From contig MCFE01000024.1 of NCBI GenBank assembly GCA_002104905.1, positions 1-64,000 on the forward strand: a stretch of DNA of 64,000 nucleotides. Reading direction: 5' to 3'. Under the pieces are notes generated by a model that saw nothing but the letters and a program-made list of their open reading frames with translations, was not told the origin of the DNA and searched no databases. A program made the position numbers and the translations under genes. This document shows, in pieces, positions 2,766 through 62,614 of this stretch. Each line of letters begins with the position of its first letter. The stretch's first letter is position 1. Origin of the DNA: Basidiobolus meristosporus CBS 931.73 (Eukaryota; Fungi; Basidiobolomycota).

Positions 2766-5700
2766 GTGACCGATGCAACCTCCTTCATACGACGAAATTT
2801 ATATAGTCCACCCAAGCCACCCTTTCGTTCACACTGTCGTATTGTCTATAGTTCCTTGTGTGCTTGCATTTTGTACTTATATATTGATATTTTTTCCTGT
2901 AATGAATTCTTCAAGATCTAAGTATAGCAAGTTGGAGTTCTACGTTTTCCCCGACCATTTAGACTTCATTGTCTAAACCGCTCAAAGCTACTTGCAACTG
3001 TAACGCTGTTCATATCCTTCTCCCCCTGAGACCCTACGCCATTACCCCCATTCTCATCTGAATTAATCAAAATTACTAGAAGTCCTCTTGTCACCTTCCA
3101 ATCTGATGGTGCCATGTGCCAAAGTGCACCTTTGCATTTGTACCATATCGTATGGATTCACCAGCCCTCCCAATAAACGCCCCACTTATAGGAACACATT
3201 TATACTCAGACAGACAAGCCTACATCGAATTATAGTATCCAGGTTTCTTTCGCTCCTCGTACAACACGCCTTGTTGATACGATACGCGTGAAAATGGAAT
3301 TCGTAAATAGAATGGCACAACGCTTCAGATGACCATAAATTCCAGTCTCGTGAGATTTTCTGTAACGAAGTCGCGTCAAGGACAAGCCCTTCGTAATGGC
3401 GTGAATATACAACGATGTTTGATCATATTAATACAGCAGCTGCAACCGAAGGATGGGAAACAAGAAATACATCGGAATGCAGGTTTGTAACGGCCGTATA
3501 ATAGTGTAGACTGGATTGATTGGTGAAACAACTCAAGAATTAATAAGATAGGCAAGTGCAGCATCCACTCTGCATCTTGCAAGTTCATCTTGGCAGACCA
3601 ATCGTGGAGCGCCATCCCTAAGGTTCCAGATACCAGTTTAAACATCGTATGAACTTGATTGATACGCCTAGGCCTCCTGATTTGTTAAATTCCTCCATGG
3701 CAGCTGGATGATTGTATCGTGATCGCAAAATGATTTGATGCGGATTCTCTTTGATGTAGAGAATCAAGGAGCCTGTATACAACCCTTGCACCTACGCTTT
3801 AACTATGAATGTCCCATTGACGATGATAAGCACCATATGTAAATAACTAAAAGCATCTCCACAATTACATGGTTTCCATTCATCAAGTGCACTACGTTGA
3901 ATCCATGAGATGAATACATAAGCGATCTATATCGAAGACTCATTGCTCGAATTACAGGTATACTACGGCCTATCAACCAAGGCTGAGTGAACACTGAGCC
4001 TTCTCTACGGGCTGTGTAGTCCATATCTGCGTGTTCTCGTGCGGTCAGGATTGCCTCAATCGCATCCCTGTATTCAAACTATGGGAAAATTGTAACGAAA
4101 CAAACTCCCATCCATCTCAACTGATGGATTAATCTAATCATATTATAAAGAGCAAATCACACAAATTTGGGGAATATAGCATACAACTACCACAAACATG
4201 TCAGCTACCCTCAGCCATACTCGTGGGCTCAGATTGATGTATAAGAGTATACATGCGTAGCAATTTCACCAATTAGGCAATCTATGGCTATGGATAGGTG
4301 CACACTGGATAAGCCACCGAGCAAGCGATCCGTTTAGAGGAAGTTGCAATGCAGTACCATGTATTGATTCATTGACTTCCAGGCTGGGCATGTTTCAACT
4401 CCACACGAGTTTTTCCGAATTCTCCCGGATCGTAGCATTGTCAACACTTGCCATATGCAGGATCATTCTATTATGATGAGTGTGGAAGGTACGAGAATCG
4501 CAGAGTTCCCTAATACCCTGCTGCCAGAAAGGGGTGGCATATGTCGCTGGACGGTTACAAACTGAGGGACTGAAGATTCCAGAAGCCTTACAAACTTGGT
4601 AATGCAGTGGGATACGAGGAATTGAGGGTGTGTTGTTTGGCTGCATGACTTTTTGAGGTATGACTGTTTCCCATATGCTATGGTAAAAGCGGATGCATAT
4701 CGTAAAAAGCAAACTCACCGCTGTTTAAATTCCTGAACCATCTGGTGACTTCCAGAGCCTTTTATGTATAGGTAGAGTATTGGAGATCTGGAAGTGATCA
4801 GGGGAGTTAGAGTGCATGGCCTCCACTTGCTAATTTACTAACGGAAGCTAAGAGGTTTTGCCAGAACCTCTTAATGTTAGCCTTACGAGACGACTGAACA
4901 GATATTGAGCTACTTTGAGCACTATATTTCCAACATTTCCACAATCATTAAGAATCATTAAGATTATGAATATCACCCTGAGAACCAGTGATTATCAAAT
5001 AGCTGAAGATCTCCTCTCTTGCCTGCTGCTTGCTGCTGTCTATCTGACTGTCTAATAAATGTATAAGTACTCCTTGCCGTAGCTTCAACTTCTTGTGATC
5101 TCGACCTTCACATTTTCTATATGCCAGTTTTCCTCAAACTAAAGCCCTATTGACCTCCACGACTTAATTGAAGGTATGTTTTTCATCAAGAAACTAGAAT
5201 GTCGTTGTCTTGTATCACATACCTAGTCAGTTTTGTTTAATCTTCCGTTTTTACATCCAACGAACCATTGATTGAATTAAATATTTGTGACAGATGAGAG
5301 TTGCAGTAGGCCACAGCTTTACATTCTGTGTGCTCAAGCACCAGCTAACTAAGGCAAAATTCATTTTTCCACTTTGACTATTTGAACAGTGTTGTTAAAA
5401 ACAGACATGTCTAAAGGAAACTTGTACCAATGCATAAATCTGACACCAGAAGTGTAGTGATGCACTAATTGAAACTTAGGACAAAGAGCACTTCTCGGTA
5501 CCCAATGCATAGAGCCTGGGACACTCCACAAGTACTGTAGCTTTAAATTCGATTATAAACATGTTTAATATGGCATCGGCTTGAAGGTTCTTCACGACAT
5601 CGTAATATATTACCATCTCCTAGTAACAAATTTTTGGACACCAACTATATGAATACAGCTGGCATGCTACTCTTTTACACCAGACTCTACAGTGCCAAGA

Positions 5701-10050: not shown

Positions 10051-13000
10051 GGTTCAATGACTTTATTAAGCTGAATGTTTTTGTCCGAATACACGTAGCT
10101 GATGAACTTCCCCGCGAGGTTGGGTTCCCAGGTGGAGAAGATGATGAAGTAGCCTAAGAATATGGTGGGTTAGTGGCCCGTAGACTTGTCGTTATGAGAC
10201 AGCGGAATCTTTACCTCCGGCAGAAGGGGCGAGTTTAATCTCTTCGGTGACGACTCCCTGCATGTAATCTCTTAGAAACTTGTGATGCCACCTGGTTGTA
10301 TTAATATCTCACATTACCTGGACGATGTTGGTGTAGGATCCAGATGACGCGATTTCTTTACCAAAGGAGACCGGGTCTCGTTCATAAACAGCGATATGAG
10401 TTAGTGGTGTTGGATGAATAGACGGGGTCTGCAGGCGAATCCTTCAGGGAGATGACAATGTGGTGAACACTAGGCCTACGGCTTTGGGTGTATGAATGAG
10501 GGCTCACTTGATGATGGTGGTTTCTTTTACGTCTATTCGATACTTCGGGTTCCGGTAATAGTTTCTATGGTTTGGACATCCCCATGCGCTGACCCCTTGG
10601 ACCCTGAAATGAAGTTAGTATGTAGCTCAGGTTGGGCTTGAAATGTCGACATGTATTTACCATTCGCCTTTCAAGATCTTCTTGAATAGTCCCTTTAACA
10701 GATAGATTAGTTAATATGTGGCAGTTTTGGGGGCATATGAAATGAGCACTACCGCTCCTTCCACGGGAATCGTTACAGGCGTGCAGGGATGACTTGATCG
10801 GATGGTCAGGATGAATTCTCCCACTAATCTTGGTTCGTATGCGGAAGCAATCAGCGTATAATTATCGGCTATTTGTTAAGTTAGTGCAAGTTCTGATCAA
10901 ATGGTGGTTCCTCTATAGTCACCTTCGATATTGTTCATCTCCAGACAACAAAATCCATGCCGATAATCGCCTGAACTAGCGATAATATCCTTTGAAGACA
11001 CACTATCAAGGTTCGGTGCCAATTAGTGCCGAAGTCGGCCAGCTCAAGCAGACTGTGTAAACTTGCCTGGTGATGCGGAAGCCACCTCTAACCAATTTCA
11101 AATTAATGGGATAGGTTCTTGGTGCCTCCATCATAATAAGCATATCAAAGCTCCCTTGGATATTCTTGGGAACGGTGATCTTGAACTGGGGGTTGTTCAT
11201 GAACGTGACGTGCGAAGCGTTTCCACCTAGGCAACCAGAGTTGGTGGGTGAGTGCGGGCATTTAATTCAAGTCGAGCAGGAAGGTACGCACCTGCGGTGT
11301 CGTTGGTCCATTGACCAGGAACCTGAAAATATTTGAGTATTAGACGGGCGCGGAGTCCAGAAATGCCAACGTTCCGTCTACCTTCTTTTCGTACAAATAT
11401 CTATCTGGGATTTCGAAGAATTTGAAAGGAGACATGCAGAACGTCCGGATGGTATAGTTCAATGAACGAATCTTTTCATGTTGCGATAGCTAGTAACAAG
11501 AAAACACTCAGTAATCACATAGGAGCATAAGGGACCAAAGTCAAAGTGGCTTACCACGATCGTGTATTTATGGATCCCCGGTGGTGAATTAAAGCGTATC
11601 TAGGTTGGTTTAATGCTCAGTAGACTGTGTCATGCTAAACTGCCATATCCATAGAGTATACCAATATATGCGGGCTATTGACATAGATTCCCTGATAATG
11701 AAGAGAACTGTGAGAAACTCTTGAAGAACGAGAAGAGACGATGTTGGTACCCTACCTGAACTAAAGGCTTTTCGGGGTAATACACTTTGGAGCATCCGGT
11801 ATCGCCATACACGTGCAGGGTGATGTAGTCTCTATTCTCCTCTTTCACCAACACATGCTTAGTGAGTAACAACCAAACGGCAGACAATTTCTCGTGATTG
11901 ACCGAAACTTCAAGTCCGTATTGTGGGTTGTATCCTGTAGTTCAAAAGAATAAGCATTACAAAGTAGTGGCTCATCTACGCGATGGACGCGAACCTAGAT
12001 TGTATGTGTCTTTTTTCGGCCCATGATTACTCAACCAAGATCTAAAGAAATACGAGGCGACCTGAGTTAAGAGCTTCAGGCAGTCCAACAAACCAACTTA
12101 CGAGTGTAGTACATAGCGATAGGTGAAGAGCTCAGGATTCCAGTTCATGTGAATCGAATCAAAATATTTACACACCGACTCGAAATTGATCCAAAAAATC
12201 CCTTTACAAAACGTCAATTAACCTAGAGAAGTTTGGAGTCGTATGATATGCCTTACCATCATCTTTACTTCTCGCTTCGATAGGATCATAACCCAGCGTG
12301 TTTTTCAATTGCATCGACCAATTCTCCTCGTCTAAGCAGCCAAAATCCCCCTTCCAACGCATATGACTCCATGGGTTTTTGACTTGCAGAAGCCGCAACC
12401 CGTCTACTTCTCTAACATCTGGTTGAATCAGATTAGGTGGATACCAACTCGCGAGTTCATGATCCCAGAGGTCAGAAATACCTAGAACAGCATATGCATG
12501 TGTAGGGACGAGCCCAAGCTCATCGGCCTCGATCTCATCAAGTTCTCCGGTAGCAATGGTGATCAAGGCATCTCCTGTATTCAAGAAAAATCGTTATGAA
12601 AGAGCTCGCTGATGTTGGTCGTTTCTAGAAAATACCATATTTTTGACCGTCAAACATTCGTTTCCATTGGCTATCTTGGTTAAACGATTTACTATGTTCC
12701 AAGGTAACAGGTGTTAAGCAAGTCGGCATGCCTCCGATGCAAATTTCGAGTTGCTACATACTCTGTGATAAAAATGTGCTCGGGTACCCAACCAGTTAAA
12801 GCACTTCATGAATGATGAGTAGGGTTCTTGGAGATTTGCCAACCATTCTATTGATTCTACTCACTGTAAATCTATACTCGAGTTCCTAGATTCCACAGCA
12901 GAAGCAACGAATACATTAGTGAAACGGGCACAATAAATCATCTTCTTGGCATCACTTACGATCCCGGAAAATCATATCCGCCCATGAGCTTCATGTACTA

Positions 13001-15028
13001 CAGGAATGCCATATTTGATAAGCTATGTTTGTAAATAACCTCAAATAGCTTGAAGTGTGGACTCACCGCCTTTTCAATGATACTTGCCCAAAGCTCTTTC
13101 CTGCCAGCAATGTAAGTGCACATGGGAATGCCGTTCACGCTTATCGGTAGTGAATCGTCAACCACTGAGTGAACAAAACGTTAAGATGCACTGCCTGCTA
13201 GGTTGATATGCGTGTCTACTATTAAGCTTACCAACCTAGTGAGGTGTGTGAGTAGAGATAAAGCAACTGAAGGTGTGTGCGTTAAACGTACTTTACGTGG
13301 AATGCCATTATATATCAGCTTTATCATGTATTTACCACTGGCATTATATTGCGGTCTGCCGTGTTCGTCTTGCGGATAAATACAAGCGGTGATCAGCTAA
13401 AGGAGGAACGGATAGGTACATAGTGTACATGGATTTAAGCGCCTTGCATCATTCAGCAGACGAGATTATAGACGTTCTACCTGCTTTTTGAACTTTTCTT
13501 CGTATGCTGCACAGACACATAAAGATGCGACAAAAGAGCAATCGGTAACAACTGCCTGATTAAAGAGAAAAATACTAAGCAAAAGTTGCCATTGGAGGTT
13601 TAAAGGGGAAACTTACTTGAATGATATTCTGGCTGTTGTTCAGGTGATTAGGGGAAAGTGTTATGGAAAATCTCGGACAGGAAGCAATGGGAAATCACCA
13701 ACCTAGATATTACTTTAATCATAGTTGGATCTTTCATGAGCTCAGAGGGTCTCTGCCAGCTTCCAAAGTTTTGTATTTGTTTTTCGGAGAGTGGCAGTGG
13801 GCCGTCAGGATCACTAAATATCAGATGTTTATCAATACAAATATGCAGGGAGTCCCTTTATGGAATGCTTACTTACACAAAAGGCTGGGAGTAGTCGAAA
13901 TTTTCCCGCAAGTCAATCTCTAGCCAAGGCAAGTAAGCCTTTCCATTTACATATGACGAGGTTTTGAGCACTTCTAACTCCTGGTTGGTCAGCTTAACTT
14001 CACCTATGACAGGGGAAGATATCACCGGACTACGAAGGGGCTGCTGATAGGCTTCATTGTCGAGATGGATGTCAGGTTGAAGTATTCCCTTCGCCTAGCG
14101 AAATATGTGCGAACCTTTACAATTCGTGGAAATCTCGAGGAGTTTGGGAGTGAGCGAGATGGATGTGCTTTGCTTGATCTTCTCTCCTTGATCTATGACC
14201 TCAGACAGCCACCGTTTAATCTGTACCTTTGACTTTTCGTCCGTTTCCGCTGTAGAGAACACCAGATTAGCCTCCACTCTACTCAACAACCTGGTAAACG
14301 CTCTACCTTTAGCCGCTCGTAAGTAATAATCCGCAGCGCTTGTATATTGTTGAAGCGCCTCTTTCAAAAGGCCCAAACCGTTTTTCTCTTCTCCAAGTTT
14401 ATGATACCGCTGTTGAAGGCATCGCATTGTTAACAACGGAAAGTATACATGTTACTTGGAGGAGTTGTATGGTACGCACTTTGGCTTTTGTGAGAAAATC
14501 TTCCGAGGTGGACGGCTGTGAATTTCGCTGTGTTCTGTTGATTTGTATCAATTCAAGCTGTTCGGCCCGAGAAATGTAAGCACTTGCTCGCTGAGTGATT
14601 TCTCGCTTTTGTGTTTCGTTTTTCTCCACTATGACGGTGAAACAGCCATTATTACGAAAAGGCGGCAAAGGGAGGGACTTACAAGTGAACTCCAGTAGCT
14701 ACGTACCGTCAACAATGTACAAAAATATCTAGGTCAAGAAAAAGGGTATAACGATGATTAACGATGAGTCATTTATTATCGAAATCGCTTGAAAAAACAA
14801 GAGAACATGCAGTAAAGTCCTGACTCAAACCATTTTACCGAGCAGAAAAACCAATCAAAAGTAAATATGTCACTTTACCTCGGCAACTTCCAAATACAAC
14901 CCCCGCGCTTTGACAAAGTTTTCCTGGTGGTCAGCCTGTACAGCCTGCTGCGCTAAGGAGAAGGAGATTTTGTACAACTCGCTTACGCTTTTACCATGAT
15001 AGGGACTCTCTTTACCATTGGGAAACAT
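10047..15028 (-). CDS. palB: Calpain-7/PalB/Rim13-like cysteine protease: two MIT domains, CysPc catalytic domain, tandem calpain-III domains; ~33 exons
   Basis: Hand-spliced from MFPNGKES. Two MIT-like helical domains; catalytic Cys in QNIIQ|[13 protein letters not shown] (codon 13538-13540), His in [10 protein letters not shown], Asn in VKNPW; [49 protein letters not shown], two NPQF/NPKY calpain-III repeats; stop TGA at 10047-10049. Confidence 0.93.
11003..11066 (-). other. GC-AG intron in calpain gene
   Basis: Donor AG|GCAAGT. It is the only phase-2 donor that joins GGFRIT to [14 protein letters not shown] in frame. Confidence 0.75.
13232..13235 (-). other. 4-nt microexon (GTTG) in calpain catalytic domain
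   Basis: Flanked by GT-AG introns 13236-13291 and 13165-13231. Inclusion gives GIPRK-V-V-VDD; skipping frameshifts. Confidence 0.85.
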
Positions 15029-57757: not shown

Positions 57758-58922
57758 ATCGAACTGCACTTCGGTTCGAGTTGTTTCCCTTTTATTTTCG
57801 CTGTATCGAGAGAACTCTCAATCGAGGCTGAGCGAAACCGCCGGAAATACAAGGATGCAGTGAAGAAAAAGTGGGTGGGTGTGGCGAAGGTACGGGACGA
57901 ATATTACAAAGCTGATCTCCAAACTGCCGTAAATTAGGTTACCGACTAGCCAAAAGGTCTTTTAAATAAGTTCCGGGTCATTCCACACCCCGCCTGGTTC
58001 CTAAAACGTTGTTTAAAAATCATTCCGCGCCCTTTGGCGTTGGAGAAAATCCCGCCTGTTAGCCGACTGGTTTCAAAAGCGTCAAAGAGCGGTTGAACTC
58101 GGAGTCAGAGACATTGAAAATTCCTATTACATCGTTTCCGAACGGAAGTTCACGACCATGCGACAGGATATCACGTGCCAATCCCTTCTGGAGATCCACG
58201 GAAATTAGGAGTAAGCAGGTGATGATTCATGACGTAGATTCAATTGAATGGCCACTATACGATAATGTCAGTGAAATGGGTTAAACAAGGGAAAATCAGG
58301 AAGAGCCGGTGATACAGCGTAGCCCTGTCTGCTAACGCGGTTTGGGAGGTGGCAGCTGAAAGCGCAAGGAAATCTGACCATATGCGCCAGGTAGGGCTTG
58401 CTGGCATCTGCTATTTCCAAAGCAGATGCCATGACGGAGCAGAGTGGCGGCTGAGTATTATTAATTATGTGGTGTGCAAGGATAGCCATCAGAATTAGCG
58501 ATATTTATACCAGGGTTCCATCGCGCCAATCAGATCCGACACAACGAAGCAGTCCGACTCAGGTTGAGTTGGGCTATCCAAGGGTATAATTCCATTCTGG
58601 ACTGATATGGTAAGAACAGGAGCCAAATAAGTGTCATTCACATGCTTCCATCCAACGCAAACAACGATTTGAGTATTGAAAAACCACTGATTGATTCTAT
58701 GGCGTCTTTGGATAATTTGGCCCCTTAGTCCGCGGAATTCGGCAATTACAATAGAGACGTAAATATGACATTTTCATATATATTATTGTTGATCTCGCCT
58801 TCCTGACTCATTCAGCTTCATTCCCTGAACCTTGTAACCTTGCGATAATTCCCTATCCTGTATAATTCTCTTTTGTAACCAACTTCTAACTTCTGGTGCA
58901 AGGTTAAGAATAACTAGTAAAT

Positions 58923-60227
58923 ATGGCCTTTGTGGACGAATTCAAATCTGCCCCTAGGACCGCAGCCTTCGTTGTCTTCTTCCTGGGCCAAGCGGCGATA
59001 ATCAACTTCTCGCAGATACTGTCGTCAATACTCCGACCCTTCAGCAACGTATTGTACGAGCGGTTCATCAGCTATTCACAGCGGCTCTTTGGCATCCTGT
59101 TGGTTGCCATCACAGAACTCTTTGCCCCCTCTTCCTTCGTTATCAGTGCGGATCCCGAGGCTGCGGATATCTTGAAAAACCCCACCAGCGCGTCCCTCCC
59201 CTTGCTATCCTTTCCGGACCGGATAATACTAATTGCCAATCACCAGGTATTCTCTCTTCACACTCCTTTGATTGCCGAGTCACTAACCCAGTACTGTACA
59301 GATATACGCAGACTGGATTTATCTATGGTGAGTTCTCCGTTTATTTCGCCGGTGACCACTCACTAACAGTCCTCCTAGGTGTATCGCGTATTTTGCAAAG
59401 GCTCATGGCGCTATTAAGATCATTTTAAAGGATACGCTCAAGCATATCCCGATCTTTGGATGGTAAGTAAATCAATCCAGCACCGTGGCGCACCACTTTG
59501 GCTAACTTAATCATCTCTTTAGGGTAAATATATATAAAACCGCTCTCCCACCAAGCAAATCTCTAATCTTGCTAACATATAGGGAATGCAGTTTTTCGAT
59601 TTCATATTCCTGAAAAGGAGCTGGGCTACGGACCAGGCCCACTTGACTCAGCATCTAAACCGCCTTTCCAGATCAGTCGATCCATTGTGGTTGATCCTCT
59701 TCCCGGAGGGGACAGTCATTTCCGATTGCACCCGCAAGAAATCTAACGCATTTGCCGCGAAGGAGAAGATTTACACACCCAAAAACGTACTTCTTCCTCG
59801 GTCCACTGGAATGCACTTTTGTTGCTCGCAACTCCGGAAATCAGTGAACTATGTATACGACCTGACCGTCGGGTACGAAGGACTGAAGCAAGACCACATC
59901 CCTCAGATCGAGTACACGCTTAAGAGTATGTACTTTCTTAGCAAGTACCCGCGTCAGATCCATGTGCACGTGCGTCGTTTCGATATGAACGACATTCCTG
60001 CCGACGACACCGAGTTTTCTCACTGGATTCGAGAAAGATGGCAAGAGAAGGACCAGCTGATGGAGCATTTCTACAAGAATGGATGCTTTCCAGCCACTGA
60101 CCATATGAAAGTGATCGACATCAAAATGAACCACTTCTCGGACCTTGGCCAAATCTGGCTCCTAAGCATCCCGCTAATCATAGTCTCGTGTACTATCTGG
60201 TATTTCGTCAGGAACTATATATTTTAG
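58923..60227 (+). CDS. Lysophospholipid acyltransferase (LCLAT1/Cst26-like AGPAT family), 5 exons including a 1-nt exon
   Basis: IILIANHQ|IYADWIYLW|CIAYFAKAHGAIKIILKDTLKHIPIFGW|GMQFFDFIFLKRSW..WLILFPEGT..VLLPRSTG..VYDLTVGY. Confidence 0.92.
59523..59523 (+). other. Single-nucleotide exon (G)
   Basis: Lies between intron 59463-59522 (GTAAGT..GCTAAC..TTTAG) and intron 59524-59582 (GTAAAT..GCTAAC..ATAG). It supplies the third base of the Trp codon TG|G. Confidence 0.85.
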
Positions 60228-60596
60228 AATCCCGTACAGAACCCGTACTACTTTATATGTATATCCTTCTTTACCTCCTTGGATAAGTATCATTACACAT
60301 GAATTTGCCAGCTGGCGGTTGGGTGTCTGCAACACACTGAGAAGAGGCTTCTGCCATTGTCATGGTCTAAATCCCTGCGCCACAACTATACATTATCACT
60401 GTAAACATAATTATTTATTAACACTGTTCCAACAATGGATTCTTCATGGTTATATTCATGTTAGTGCTATATACTCCCACAAACAGATCAGTGCCCTGTG
60501 CTTTTCCAAGCGTAACTCAATACTTTATGAAAATAAAGTCTCGCCTGTACAGCGGAAACCCTTTCCCTCTCCAGCGGACATCAACAACAGGTCTTG

Positions 60597-62614
60597 TCAG
60601 CGACTGGTATCTTCGCACATGTATTTCTCCATGTGAATCTCGTTCATTCGCTGATGTAAATACTCGATCTCTGCCTTCAAATATGTATAGTCTTCTAATA
60701 AGGCGAACTTCGAAATATCTATTGCCGGTGGTTCAGTGAATTGTCGAGACTTGCGCATGACAACTGTGGGCTTTTTGGTTACTGCGATCGTCTCGGACCT
60801 GATCACCCGTACCTGTCGTAAGGAAAGCAGCATCAGCACTTCATGTTTGATTCAATCCAGGATAGGTATTGTGGACGTTCCTGCCGAGGCTAGTACACCT
60901 CCATTGCAGTTATCCAGCATGACCTGACAGATGAATAGCTATTTACCTCGGCATGCAGCTGGTTCAAAGAGTCTGCGTGCAATTGTTGAATCTCCGTTTC
61001 CTCGCTCATCTGATCCTGCAACTTCCTGACCTGCTGGGTCAATCTTTCAATGCTTCTCTGCTGCTCTTGGGCTCTTCGTTGAAGGATCTTGACCAGAATT
61101 CGAGGATTGGCCTCACGTGTGCGGTACCCACGCCTCCAGACCAACAATAACCGTTACCACACCTTCTAAGAGCAATGAAGCCGATGGGAGTGACACACTT
61201 ACCACAAGGCCTGGATTCGGGTGGCTGCGATTTTCTCGTTTTTGTATTTGCGGATTCGTTGACGAACCATTCGTCCGCGCCAAATTTTCTGGATATTCGA
61301 TACTGCCAAGTCCTGCTTGGTATCTGAGCGCGCAATAATGTGAGCAGGGGCTTGTTAGGATGCAATGCACATTCTGACTTACGTAGTTCATCGGATTGTG
61401 GTCCGCGGTATGTCGTGCCAATAAGTGCACACTCCTTGTGGAGTTGATTCAAAGACATAGGTCTTTTGGTGATATGGTATCCACGCAGTTTCACAAACCT
61501 ATGGTTGTGGTGTCTCTTTCTAGCCTAACAACAGGTGAATACACGTTAACCACCCAGTTTGACCCATATATGATCTAAAGTAAGTTGATCCGTTCTTAAA
61601 CATACCAGATGTCCCCGGGCCAACGCTTGAATCCTTGTACTGGCGATGATCAGTCCCTCGGTGTCACGTTGGAGAAGGCCTTTGAAATACTGGCGTATAT
61701 CTTTGACCTGGATGGTTAACGAGATGATACATAAACGTGTGTTCGGCAGCGGGGAAAAATTGAAGGGCACATACTTGCAGTTGAAGTTTCTGAACCTGCC
61801 AGCCCAATTGATCAATTCTCTCTACAGCTAGGAATTCGGATGGTCAGTTATATTCTCTGAATCATGGAGAATGAACATCAGATATACCTTCGTCAATCTG
61901 TTGGTGGTCCGCCATCTTACCGCCATCAGGCTCGTCGGGAGGCCTAACGGTCACTTCGGGGCGGGAATGGTTAGCTACCAAGGAGTAGTTGCGTCTCTAC
62001 AGAGTTCATTATAGCTTACAAGTTGAGGTGACAGTTGTGCTCTGTATATCGTCATTCGATTCAGCTGGCATATCCTCTTGCTCGAGGCCTACTGTTACGA
62101 CTTCCTGTGGTGGTTCACTACACCGGAGTGTGCTCAGACTTTGTTCGGTTGCAGCAGTACAGTCGTGGCTATTAAGTGGGACGAAATTTTGTTCTTGGGT
62201 TTCGAGCTGAGGCGTATACGAGGTTCCATTGGGCTTGCTAATATACGTCTCCCTTTTGGTCACCAACGGTGCATCGGCCTCCGTCGCATTCTGTATATGT
62301 GCGATAGTTATATACTGCCCACTTGTGCTTTTTGTGGCGGCAAAACTATCTGAACGGCTTGCGTTTGAATGAAAAGTGTTTGGAGCGCTGTCTCGGGGTT
62401 GCTCGTCAGATTTCTACAAAGCGGTTAGCATCGCCTCTCATGAGGAGGGGTTTCAAGTAAGCTATGGTCATACCGAGGGAAAAGTGTAAGTCTGAATATT
62501 CGGAGCCGAGTTGGTTTCAGGCGAACGGTGCTTCTTTGAGCCAAGCAGACTGAAACGCTTACTCTCGGTCCCCTCCGGTTTGGCGGATGATTTTTTCCTC
62601 CAGCTCTTGAACAT
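60597..62614 (-). CDS. Hypothetical protein with three IQ (calmodulin-binding) motifs and coiled coils, multi-exon
   Basis: Hand-spliced IQALARGHL|ARKR, IQKIWRGRMVRQR and IQALW|RGYRTR; coiled-coil QEQQRSIERLTQQVRKLQ. Confidence 0.75.

Follow-up and report, generated by a model that had tools for sequence, protein, structure and literature searches.

The list of known one-nucleotide exons is very short. The Arabidopsis gene APC11 contains a constitutive exon of this type, for which intron definition with removal of the flanking introns one after the other has been proposed (PMC4674806, Guo & Liu 2015). In the Fusarium gene CYP621A a single G in an AGGGT motif forms an exon that is covered by SRA reads; its authors describe it as the second example and the first in fungi (PMC12940212, Nelson & Syed 2026). 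A long-read annotation of Coprinopsis cinerea reports thirteen one-nucleotide exons in 13 genes (PMC12230235). Here we analyze a 64,000-nt stretch of DNA (the window) from the fungus Basidiobolus meristosporus CBS 931.73 (contig MCFE01000024.1). An acyltransferase gene, which was read within positions 58600-61000, very probably contains a constitutive one-nucleotide exon, the G at position 59523, between two complete U2-type introns. A preliminary description of this DNA had treated APC11 as the only known case; in the light of the Fusarium and C. cinerea exons this view is out of date. One-nucleotide exons are already known elsewhere, and the acyltransferase case is notable for its deep conservation, its fixed G and the broken gene models at the junction. 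The public B. meristosporus record already encodes the right protein. A full-text literature search found no report of a one-nucleotide exon in this acyltransferase.

The exon resembles that of Fusarium CYP621A in several respects. Both belong to fungal nuclear genes, consist of a single G between canonical short introns, carry the AGGGT motif and fall inside a conserved protein motif. In both cases there is a phase mismatch, an intronless relative serves as a ruler (CYP621B1 in Fusarium, the orthologs L010 and L011 here) and gene predictors miss such an exon. The Fusarium exon is confined to one genus and one P450 subfamily, provides the second base of a Gly codon and has been confirmed with SRA reads, whereas the B. 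meristosporus exon lies in an LPLAT acyltransferase, provides the third base of its codon and occurs in two fungal phyla. Like the APC11 exon it is needed for the reading frame, and the recursive-like removal model would apply to it as well. APC11 differs in being a plant gene that was tested with GFP fusions and in which the identity of the base is irrelevant to splicing; the base in the acyltransferase genes is G in 9/9 loci. The C. cinerea exons likewise indicate that fungal spliceosomes handle one-nucleotide exons and that their omission breaks gene models; that report gives genome-wide counts, whereas the present analysis is concerned with one gene and its conservation (PMC12230235).

Reading frame across the acyltransferase junction

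The gene is located on the plus strand. Its exon 3 (59379-59462, 84 nt) ends with ...CCG ATC TTT GGA TG, and thus with the first two bases of the Trp145 codon. This is followed by intron A (59463-59522; 60 nt, phase 2, GTAAGT...GGCTAAC...TTTAG), by the lone G at 59523, which is the third base of the codon (TG|G), and by intron B (59524-59582; 59 nt, phase 0, GTAAAT...CTAAT...TGCTAAC...ATATAG). The last exon, exon 5 (59583-60227), resumes with GGA ATG CAG and ends with the stop codon TAG at 60225-60227. The preliminary description had given the same coordinates, intron lengths and lone G, and these are exact to the base. The sizes of the two introns are normal for this gene, in which the other introns measure 55 and 51 nt.

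When G 59523 is kept, the translation contains ...PIFGWGMQFFDFIFLKR... and the frame is open over 359 codons; the spliced junction reads four Gs (...GGATGGGGAATGCAG...). Removal of 59463-59582 as one intron of 120 nt results in GWECSFSISYS followed by a TGA at 59611-59613, in the last exon. Retention of intron B causes a frameshift to the same TGA, and retention of intron A generates an in-frame TAA directly after the Trp. Among the splice models compared, only the model with the one-nucleotide exon has an open frame. This bears out the earlier claim that inclusion of the G is the only way to the family motif and that a single intron or a retained intron B leads to the TGA.

The product of the one-nucleotide-exon model is letter for letter the public protein ORY05523.1 (P0001, 359 aa, annotated as 'acyltransferase-domain-containing protein'), with the last exon being 100% identical. 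In P0001 the domain PF01553 extends over residues 100-237 and hence across the junction (70.4 bits; Pfam cut-off 23), and PF16076 is found with 71.7 bits (cut-off 26.5). The translated model contains NHQIYAD, GMQFFDFIFLKR and FPEGT, which we take to be the catalytic HX4D motif, the motif II arginine block and the EGT motif of the AGPAT family, respectively; the latter two, together with Acyltransf_C, are encoded by the last exon. ORY05523.1 presumably belongs to the Cst26/LCLAT1-like branch of the AGPAT/LPLAT acyltransferases. One member of the cluster carries the source name 'lysocardiolipin and lysophospholipid acyltransferase'. With PF01553 and PF16076 and its likeness to Cst26/LCLAT1, the gene is predicted to encode an acyltransferase of the LPLAT/AGPAT type. 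If the G were skipped, the protein would lose motifs II-IV and the C-terminal domain and would in effect be null.

The junction in other fungi

We mapped public orthologous proteins exactly onto their genomic loci, and only GT/GC...AG introns were allowed. The comparison covers nine loci from eight species, namely the window gene, a B. meristosporus paralog and genes from B. ranarum, Neoconidiobolus, Rhizophagus, Gigaspora, Geosiphon, Rhizopus and Radiomyces. In five further species the protein mapping requires a single G between two GT...AG introns in the same codon. These are Neoconidiobolus thromboides (L003, G at 2123), Rhizophagus irregularis (L004, LLXI01000652.1, G at 2282), Gigaspora rosea (L005, G at 2310), Rhizopus microsporus (L006, G at 2027) and Radiomyces spectabilis (L007, G at 2138). 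The DNA of B. ranarum (L001, JASJQH010007815.1, G at 3636), of the B. meristosporus paralog (L002, MCFE01000587.1, G at 3620) and of Geosiphon pyriformis (L012, G at 1846) contains AG|G|GTAAxx, and the public proteins of these three loci are drawn differently. The paired introns, which the preliminary description had proposed to check in orthologs, are thus found with the same layout and in the same codon at eight further loci.

The introns that flank the G at the nine loci range from 45 to 327 nt and are unrelated in sequence; AGGGT is the only internal feature that they have in common. The donors of the second introns (GTAAAT, GTAAGA, GTGAGT, GTAAGC, GTATGT and GTATGA) are all good. The split codon is TGG in eight loci and ACG (AC|G, Thr) in Rhizopus. 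Because the neutral intron sequence has clearly turned over, the retention of AG-G-GT implies selection. The fact that the AG|G|GT layout occurs in distant fungal lineages makes the exon look real and very old. The intronless orthologs from Dipsacomyces acuminosporus (L011) and Neophaeococcomyces mojaviensis (L010) have an unbroken ...GG(N) TGG GGN ATG CAG... at this site; L011 reads ...TTT GGG TGG GGC ATG CAG.... Two transcript-like Entomophthoralean Logan proteins (P0054 and P0058; 405 and 407 aa on contigs of 1.4 kb) carry GWGMQ/GWGMW. A Logan-derived member of the Rhizopus cluster (P0180) was considered as a transcript and rejected; it is a genomic open reading frame that reads through the introns.

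An exact scan of metagenome contigs for the spliced Rhizophagus junction resulted in one match, the contig Ga0170475_119687652 (L013; 1363 nt). It is 86-96% identical to the R. irregularis exons block by block, and about 88% over the gene. The alignment begins inside the first R. irregularis intron, and the other five introns are absent. L013 contains one long open reading frame with LPIFGWGMQFFQFIFLKR and carries the spliced junction GGATGGGGTATG. It is best read as an environmental cDNA, probably metatranscriptomic, of a glomeromycotan related to Rhizophagus, which would give transcript-level support to the ortholog and not to the window locus. L013 also has an A/T-rich tail region.

Many public gene models are disturbed at this site. 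Twenty-five of the retrieved protein models are aberrant exactly at the junction; the taxa affected include Rhizophagus, Rhizopus, Funneliformis, Geosiphon, Bifiguratus, Mucor, B. ranarum and the B. meristosporus paralog. Inserts that begin with Val, in which the GT donor is read through, occur in B. ranarum, the paralog, Geosiphon, Funneliformis and several R. irregularis models. GMxFFDFIFLKR is missing from many models of Rhizopus and Thamnidium, in which the catalytic motif II is deleted, and the GMKFFDFIFLKR motif is absent from many models of Rhizopus. Genes are also truncated at the junction or split near it, including the R. irregularis RefSeq entries XP_065993035 and XP_065993036, which present one gene as two. 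Among the R. irregularis models in the cluster (within P0154-P0167) some truncate or split the gene, and others read through into ...GWVRILTNLIFFEYLFMIC....

Two of these models were rebuilt. The public protein of the paralog (P0003) contains a 7-aa insert, VNFPLLQ (L002:3559-3676), and that of B. ranarum (P0002) a 14-aa insert, VNIYSMLYFARLLQ (L001:3561-3721); both models read into intron B and use an internal donor. With the one-nucleotide exon the two genes give open proteins of exactly 359 aa each. A family hidden Markov model built from 39 uninterrupted homologs scored the rebuilt proteins of B. ranarum and the paralog at 488 and 489 bits and the public models at 466 and 475 bits (a gain of 22 and 14 bits). 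The Pfam scores agree with this preference for the rebuilt models.

Alternative readings and the order of splicing

Several points weigh against a one-nucleotide exon at the window locus. A look-up of sequencing runs for 58800-60400 listed no RNA run for Basidiobolus, and splicing at this locus is deduced from the DNA. An exact scan of metagenome contigs for the Basidiobolus spliced junction gave 0 matches. The agreement with ORY05523.1 is at the level of the protein sequence. L013 is from a different species and was compared with the R. irregularis gene. Furthermore, a one-nucleotide exon and a non-canonical intron of 119 nt are indistinguishable from a cDNA alone, since the extra G fits the alignment on either flank. 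The layout itself is far beyond chance. When the intervals were shuffled, an internal AG-N-GTR with at least 40 nt on either side of it was obtained with a probability of 0.007-0.35 per locus, and the layout is present in 9/9 loci; the joint probability of about 1e-12 overstates their independence, because the nine loci are phylogenetically related. Weighed together with these points, the match to ORY05523.1, the AG|G|GT layout in eight species, the intronless orthologs and the L013 junction strongly support the earlier claim of a real one-nucleotide exon. The same holds for the role of G 59523 in completing, as third base, the Trp codon within the acyltransferase motif.

The ambiguity of the cDNA leads to a reading in which a single non-canonical intron of 119 nt (59464-59582, TA...AG, or 59463-59581, GT...TA) is removed in one step and the internal AG-G-GT is irrelevant. 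Its mRNA and protein would be identical to those of the public model; alignment programs would place the junction in this manner, and the block ends of BLAST are ambiguous in the L013 comparison. However, one of the two ends of such an intron would have to be non-canonical in every species. Nor does this reading account for the conservation of AGGGT, followed by a good donor hexamer, within the otherwise unrelated introns of nine loci, for the normal intron length of each half or for the separate branch motif that a half has where one can be recognised. We therefore regard it as very improbable. Equally little speaks for a longer micro-exon, which would read into intron B, use an internal donor and add a few residues after the Trp. 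In-frame internal GT donors are present in L001 and L002 and are used by the public annotations. But intron B of the window gene has no internal GT and just a poor GC site, so that a longer micro-exon would require a GC donor at 59542 and an intron of 41 nt. The introns that remain would measure just 35-43 nt, and the inserts interrupt a motif that runs without a break in 116 homologs and in the intronless genes. The advantage of 14-22 bits for the one-nucleotide models over the insert models and the public model of the window gene, which is without an insert, point in the same direction.

According to the preliminary description, skipping of the G could serve as a switch on lipid remodelling through nonsense-mediated mRNA decay, which means that the exon is real and its skipping a regulated on/off event. 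Skipping would indeed cause a frameshift and an early TGA, and partial skipping of very small artificial exons in plants is cited in PMC4674806. Yet the switch is unsupported, and nothing indicates regulated skipping. The premature stop at 59611-59613 is in the last exon with no exon junction downstream, and decay that depends on the exon junction complex is therefore not predicted. The layout has been kept for a very long time in a housekeeping-type enzyme, which fits constitutive use, and the examples in Arabidopsis and Fusarium are described as constitutive or accurately spliced. A switch of this kind is thus highly doubtful. The least likely explanation is an assembly error or a pseudogene, i.e. 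a base missing or extra in a gene that has one ordinary intron or is dead. A homopolymer error would give a frame problem of 1 nt, but the same layout occurs in eight species that were assembled independently and in a paralog from the same genome, and with the G in use the frame is open and the domains are intact. On the comparative data this explanation is effectively refuted.

Two known systems with adjoining introns were also considered and rejected. In stwintrons (Flipphi, Fekete and colleagues) an internal intron lies within the donor, the branch site or the acceptor of an external one (PMC5587772). They share with the acyltransferase pair two U2 introns in direct contact, consecutive removal and occurrence in fungal genes, as well as a link to intron positions that are discordant by 1 nt, here between Tulasnella and the taxa with paired introns (PMC5587772). 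However, any nesting of introns A and B reduces to two intact introns with G 59523 retained. Since both are complete, with every splice signal intact and one base retained, the pair is not a stwintron; the stwintron literature offers one route to 1-nt shifts (PMC5587772) but does not fit directly. The ratchet points of recursive splicing (AG|GT, zero-length exons) are similar in that the acceptor adjoins the donor, so that removal is stepwise. They leave no nucleotide in the mRNA and serve in the removal of very long introns, whereas the introns of the acyltransferase are about 60 nt long and the G between AG and GT is kept and needed in the mRNA.

For the constitutive one-nucleotide exon we propose that each of the two introns of about 60 nt would be recognised on its own by intron definition, because each is complete with a GT donor, a CTAAY branch motif and a YAG acceptor. 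An origin of the pair by tandem duplication of one intron was considered; compared by eye, introns A and B have little in common beyond these splice signals. The preliminary description had assigned a GCTAAC branch point to both of them. The motif is present in both, and in intron A CTAAC lies 17 nt from the 3' end. In intron B, however, a branch A in GCTAAC would lie at a distance of just 7 nt from the 3' splice site, and a CTAAT at 16 nt is the more usual candidate. G 59523 is at the same time position +1 of the intron A acceptor and position -1 of the intron B donor. U1 would pair with donor positions -3 to +6, a span into which the acceptor AG|G falls. Because the acceptor of intron A (AG|G) overlaps the donor of intron B (G|GTAAAT) on the RNA, two spliceosomes probably cannot act simultaneously, and the introns would most likely be removed one after the other in either order. 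Sequential removal by intron definition, as suggested before, can thus reasonably be inferred. Either order would regenerate a usable site: the donor AGG|GTAAAT would become TGG|GTAAAT, and the acceptor TTTAG|GGT... would become TTTAG|GGG.... After both removals the mRNA would read ...GGA TG-G-GGA ATG.... The triple role of the G, as third codon base, acceptor +1 and donor -1, would explain why it is found in every locus in spite of the differing amino acid.

A scan of the window for AG-N(1-3)-GT with intron-like flanks gave 59523 as the sole candidate on the plus strand. The sites on the minus strand at 12765, 31255 and 4189 look like chance occurrences; 31255 and 4189 have no coding flanks, and the AG-A-GT at 12765 belongs to a calpain-like gene, where an exonic CAG precedes an ordinary donor. 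The translations of this region (about 12300-13200, minus strand) resemble a calpain/PalB-type cysteine protease gene with several short introns.

Distribution and evolution of the intron pair

The coding sequence begins with an ATG at 58923. Exon 1 (58923-59246, 108 codons) ends with ...IANHQ at the start of the HX4D motif and is followed by intron 1 (59247-59301; 55 nt, phase 0, GTATTC...CACTAAC...ACAG). Exon 2 (59302-59327) is a micro-exon of 26 nt, which encodes IYADWIYL plus 2 nt, and intron 2 (59328-59378; 51 nt, phase 2, GTGAGT...CACTAAC...CTAG) separates it from exon 3. The positions of the introns are well conserved in the intron-bearing fungi that were mapped, with phase 0 after NHQ, phase 2 in WC, the intron A/B pair and phase 0 near residue 209. 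The position of intron 1 is kept in all intron-bearing orthologs mapped except in the chytrid Powellomyces. The 26-nt exon 2 with the same flanking intron positions is also present in Neoconidiobolus, Rhizophagus and Gigaspora; in Rhizopus and Radiomyces it is fused with exon 3.

The nine loci span Zoopagomycota and Mucoromycota. From their distribution, the intron pair would date back at least to the divergence between the sampled Entomophthoromycotina (Basidiobolus, Neoconidiobolus) and Mucoromycota (Glomeromycotina, Mucorales). At the split codon, which the preliminary description had called a conserved Trp, W is indeed present in 116 retrieved homologs, but in Mucorales and their relatives the residue varies and may be T, L, M, S, Q or P. 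Each of these amino acids has a codon that ends in G, and the seven amino acids without such a codon are all absent from this position among the homologs; the check at the DNA level covers TGG (eight loci) and ACG (one). These NNG-compatible residues are consistent with a G that is fixed by the needs of splicing.

Two other fungi have a single canonical intron near this site. In the basidiomycete Tulasnella sp. 427 (L009:1676-1758) it lies in phase 1 of the same Trp codon (T|GTAAGT...CAG|GG GGC), 1 nt upstream of intron A. The chytrid Powellomyces hirtus (L008:1880-1944) has its intron 4 nt upstream (G|GT TGG). The relation of these discordant introns to the pair could be one of intron sliding, of loss or of independent gain at a G-rich proto-splice site. 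A more far-reaching reading, which we consider possible but short of probable, is that this is the oldest one-nucleotide exon yet recognised. The sampled Zoopagomycota and Mucoromycota would have inherited it from their common ancestor and kept it since. Because the G serves as acceptor +1 and donor -1, the codon would be restricted to NNG, and this double splice-site role would have channelled the evolution of the protein. The introns of Tulasnella and Powellomyces would then be derived or alternative states of one ancient intron cluster.

The acyltransferase exon adds a well-supported case to those already described. It has a practical consequence for annotation, as gene models are wrong at the junction in many taxa. 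The fact that the exon, unlike the published Fusarium and Arabidopsis exons, is common to two fungal phyla suggests that one-nucleotide exons are no short-lived accident and may be tenable for hundreds of millions of years. The fixed G, together with the restriction to residues that have an NNG codon, provides a simple natural test of splice-site constraint on coding sequence, and the site, with discordant introns nearby in Dikarya and chytrids, lends itself to the study of intron sliding. If the exon is as ancient as considered above, these genes would offer a natural system for intron sliding and for the birth and loss of one-nucleotide exons.

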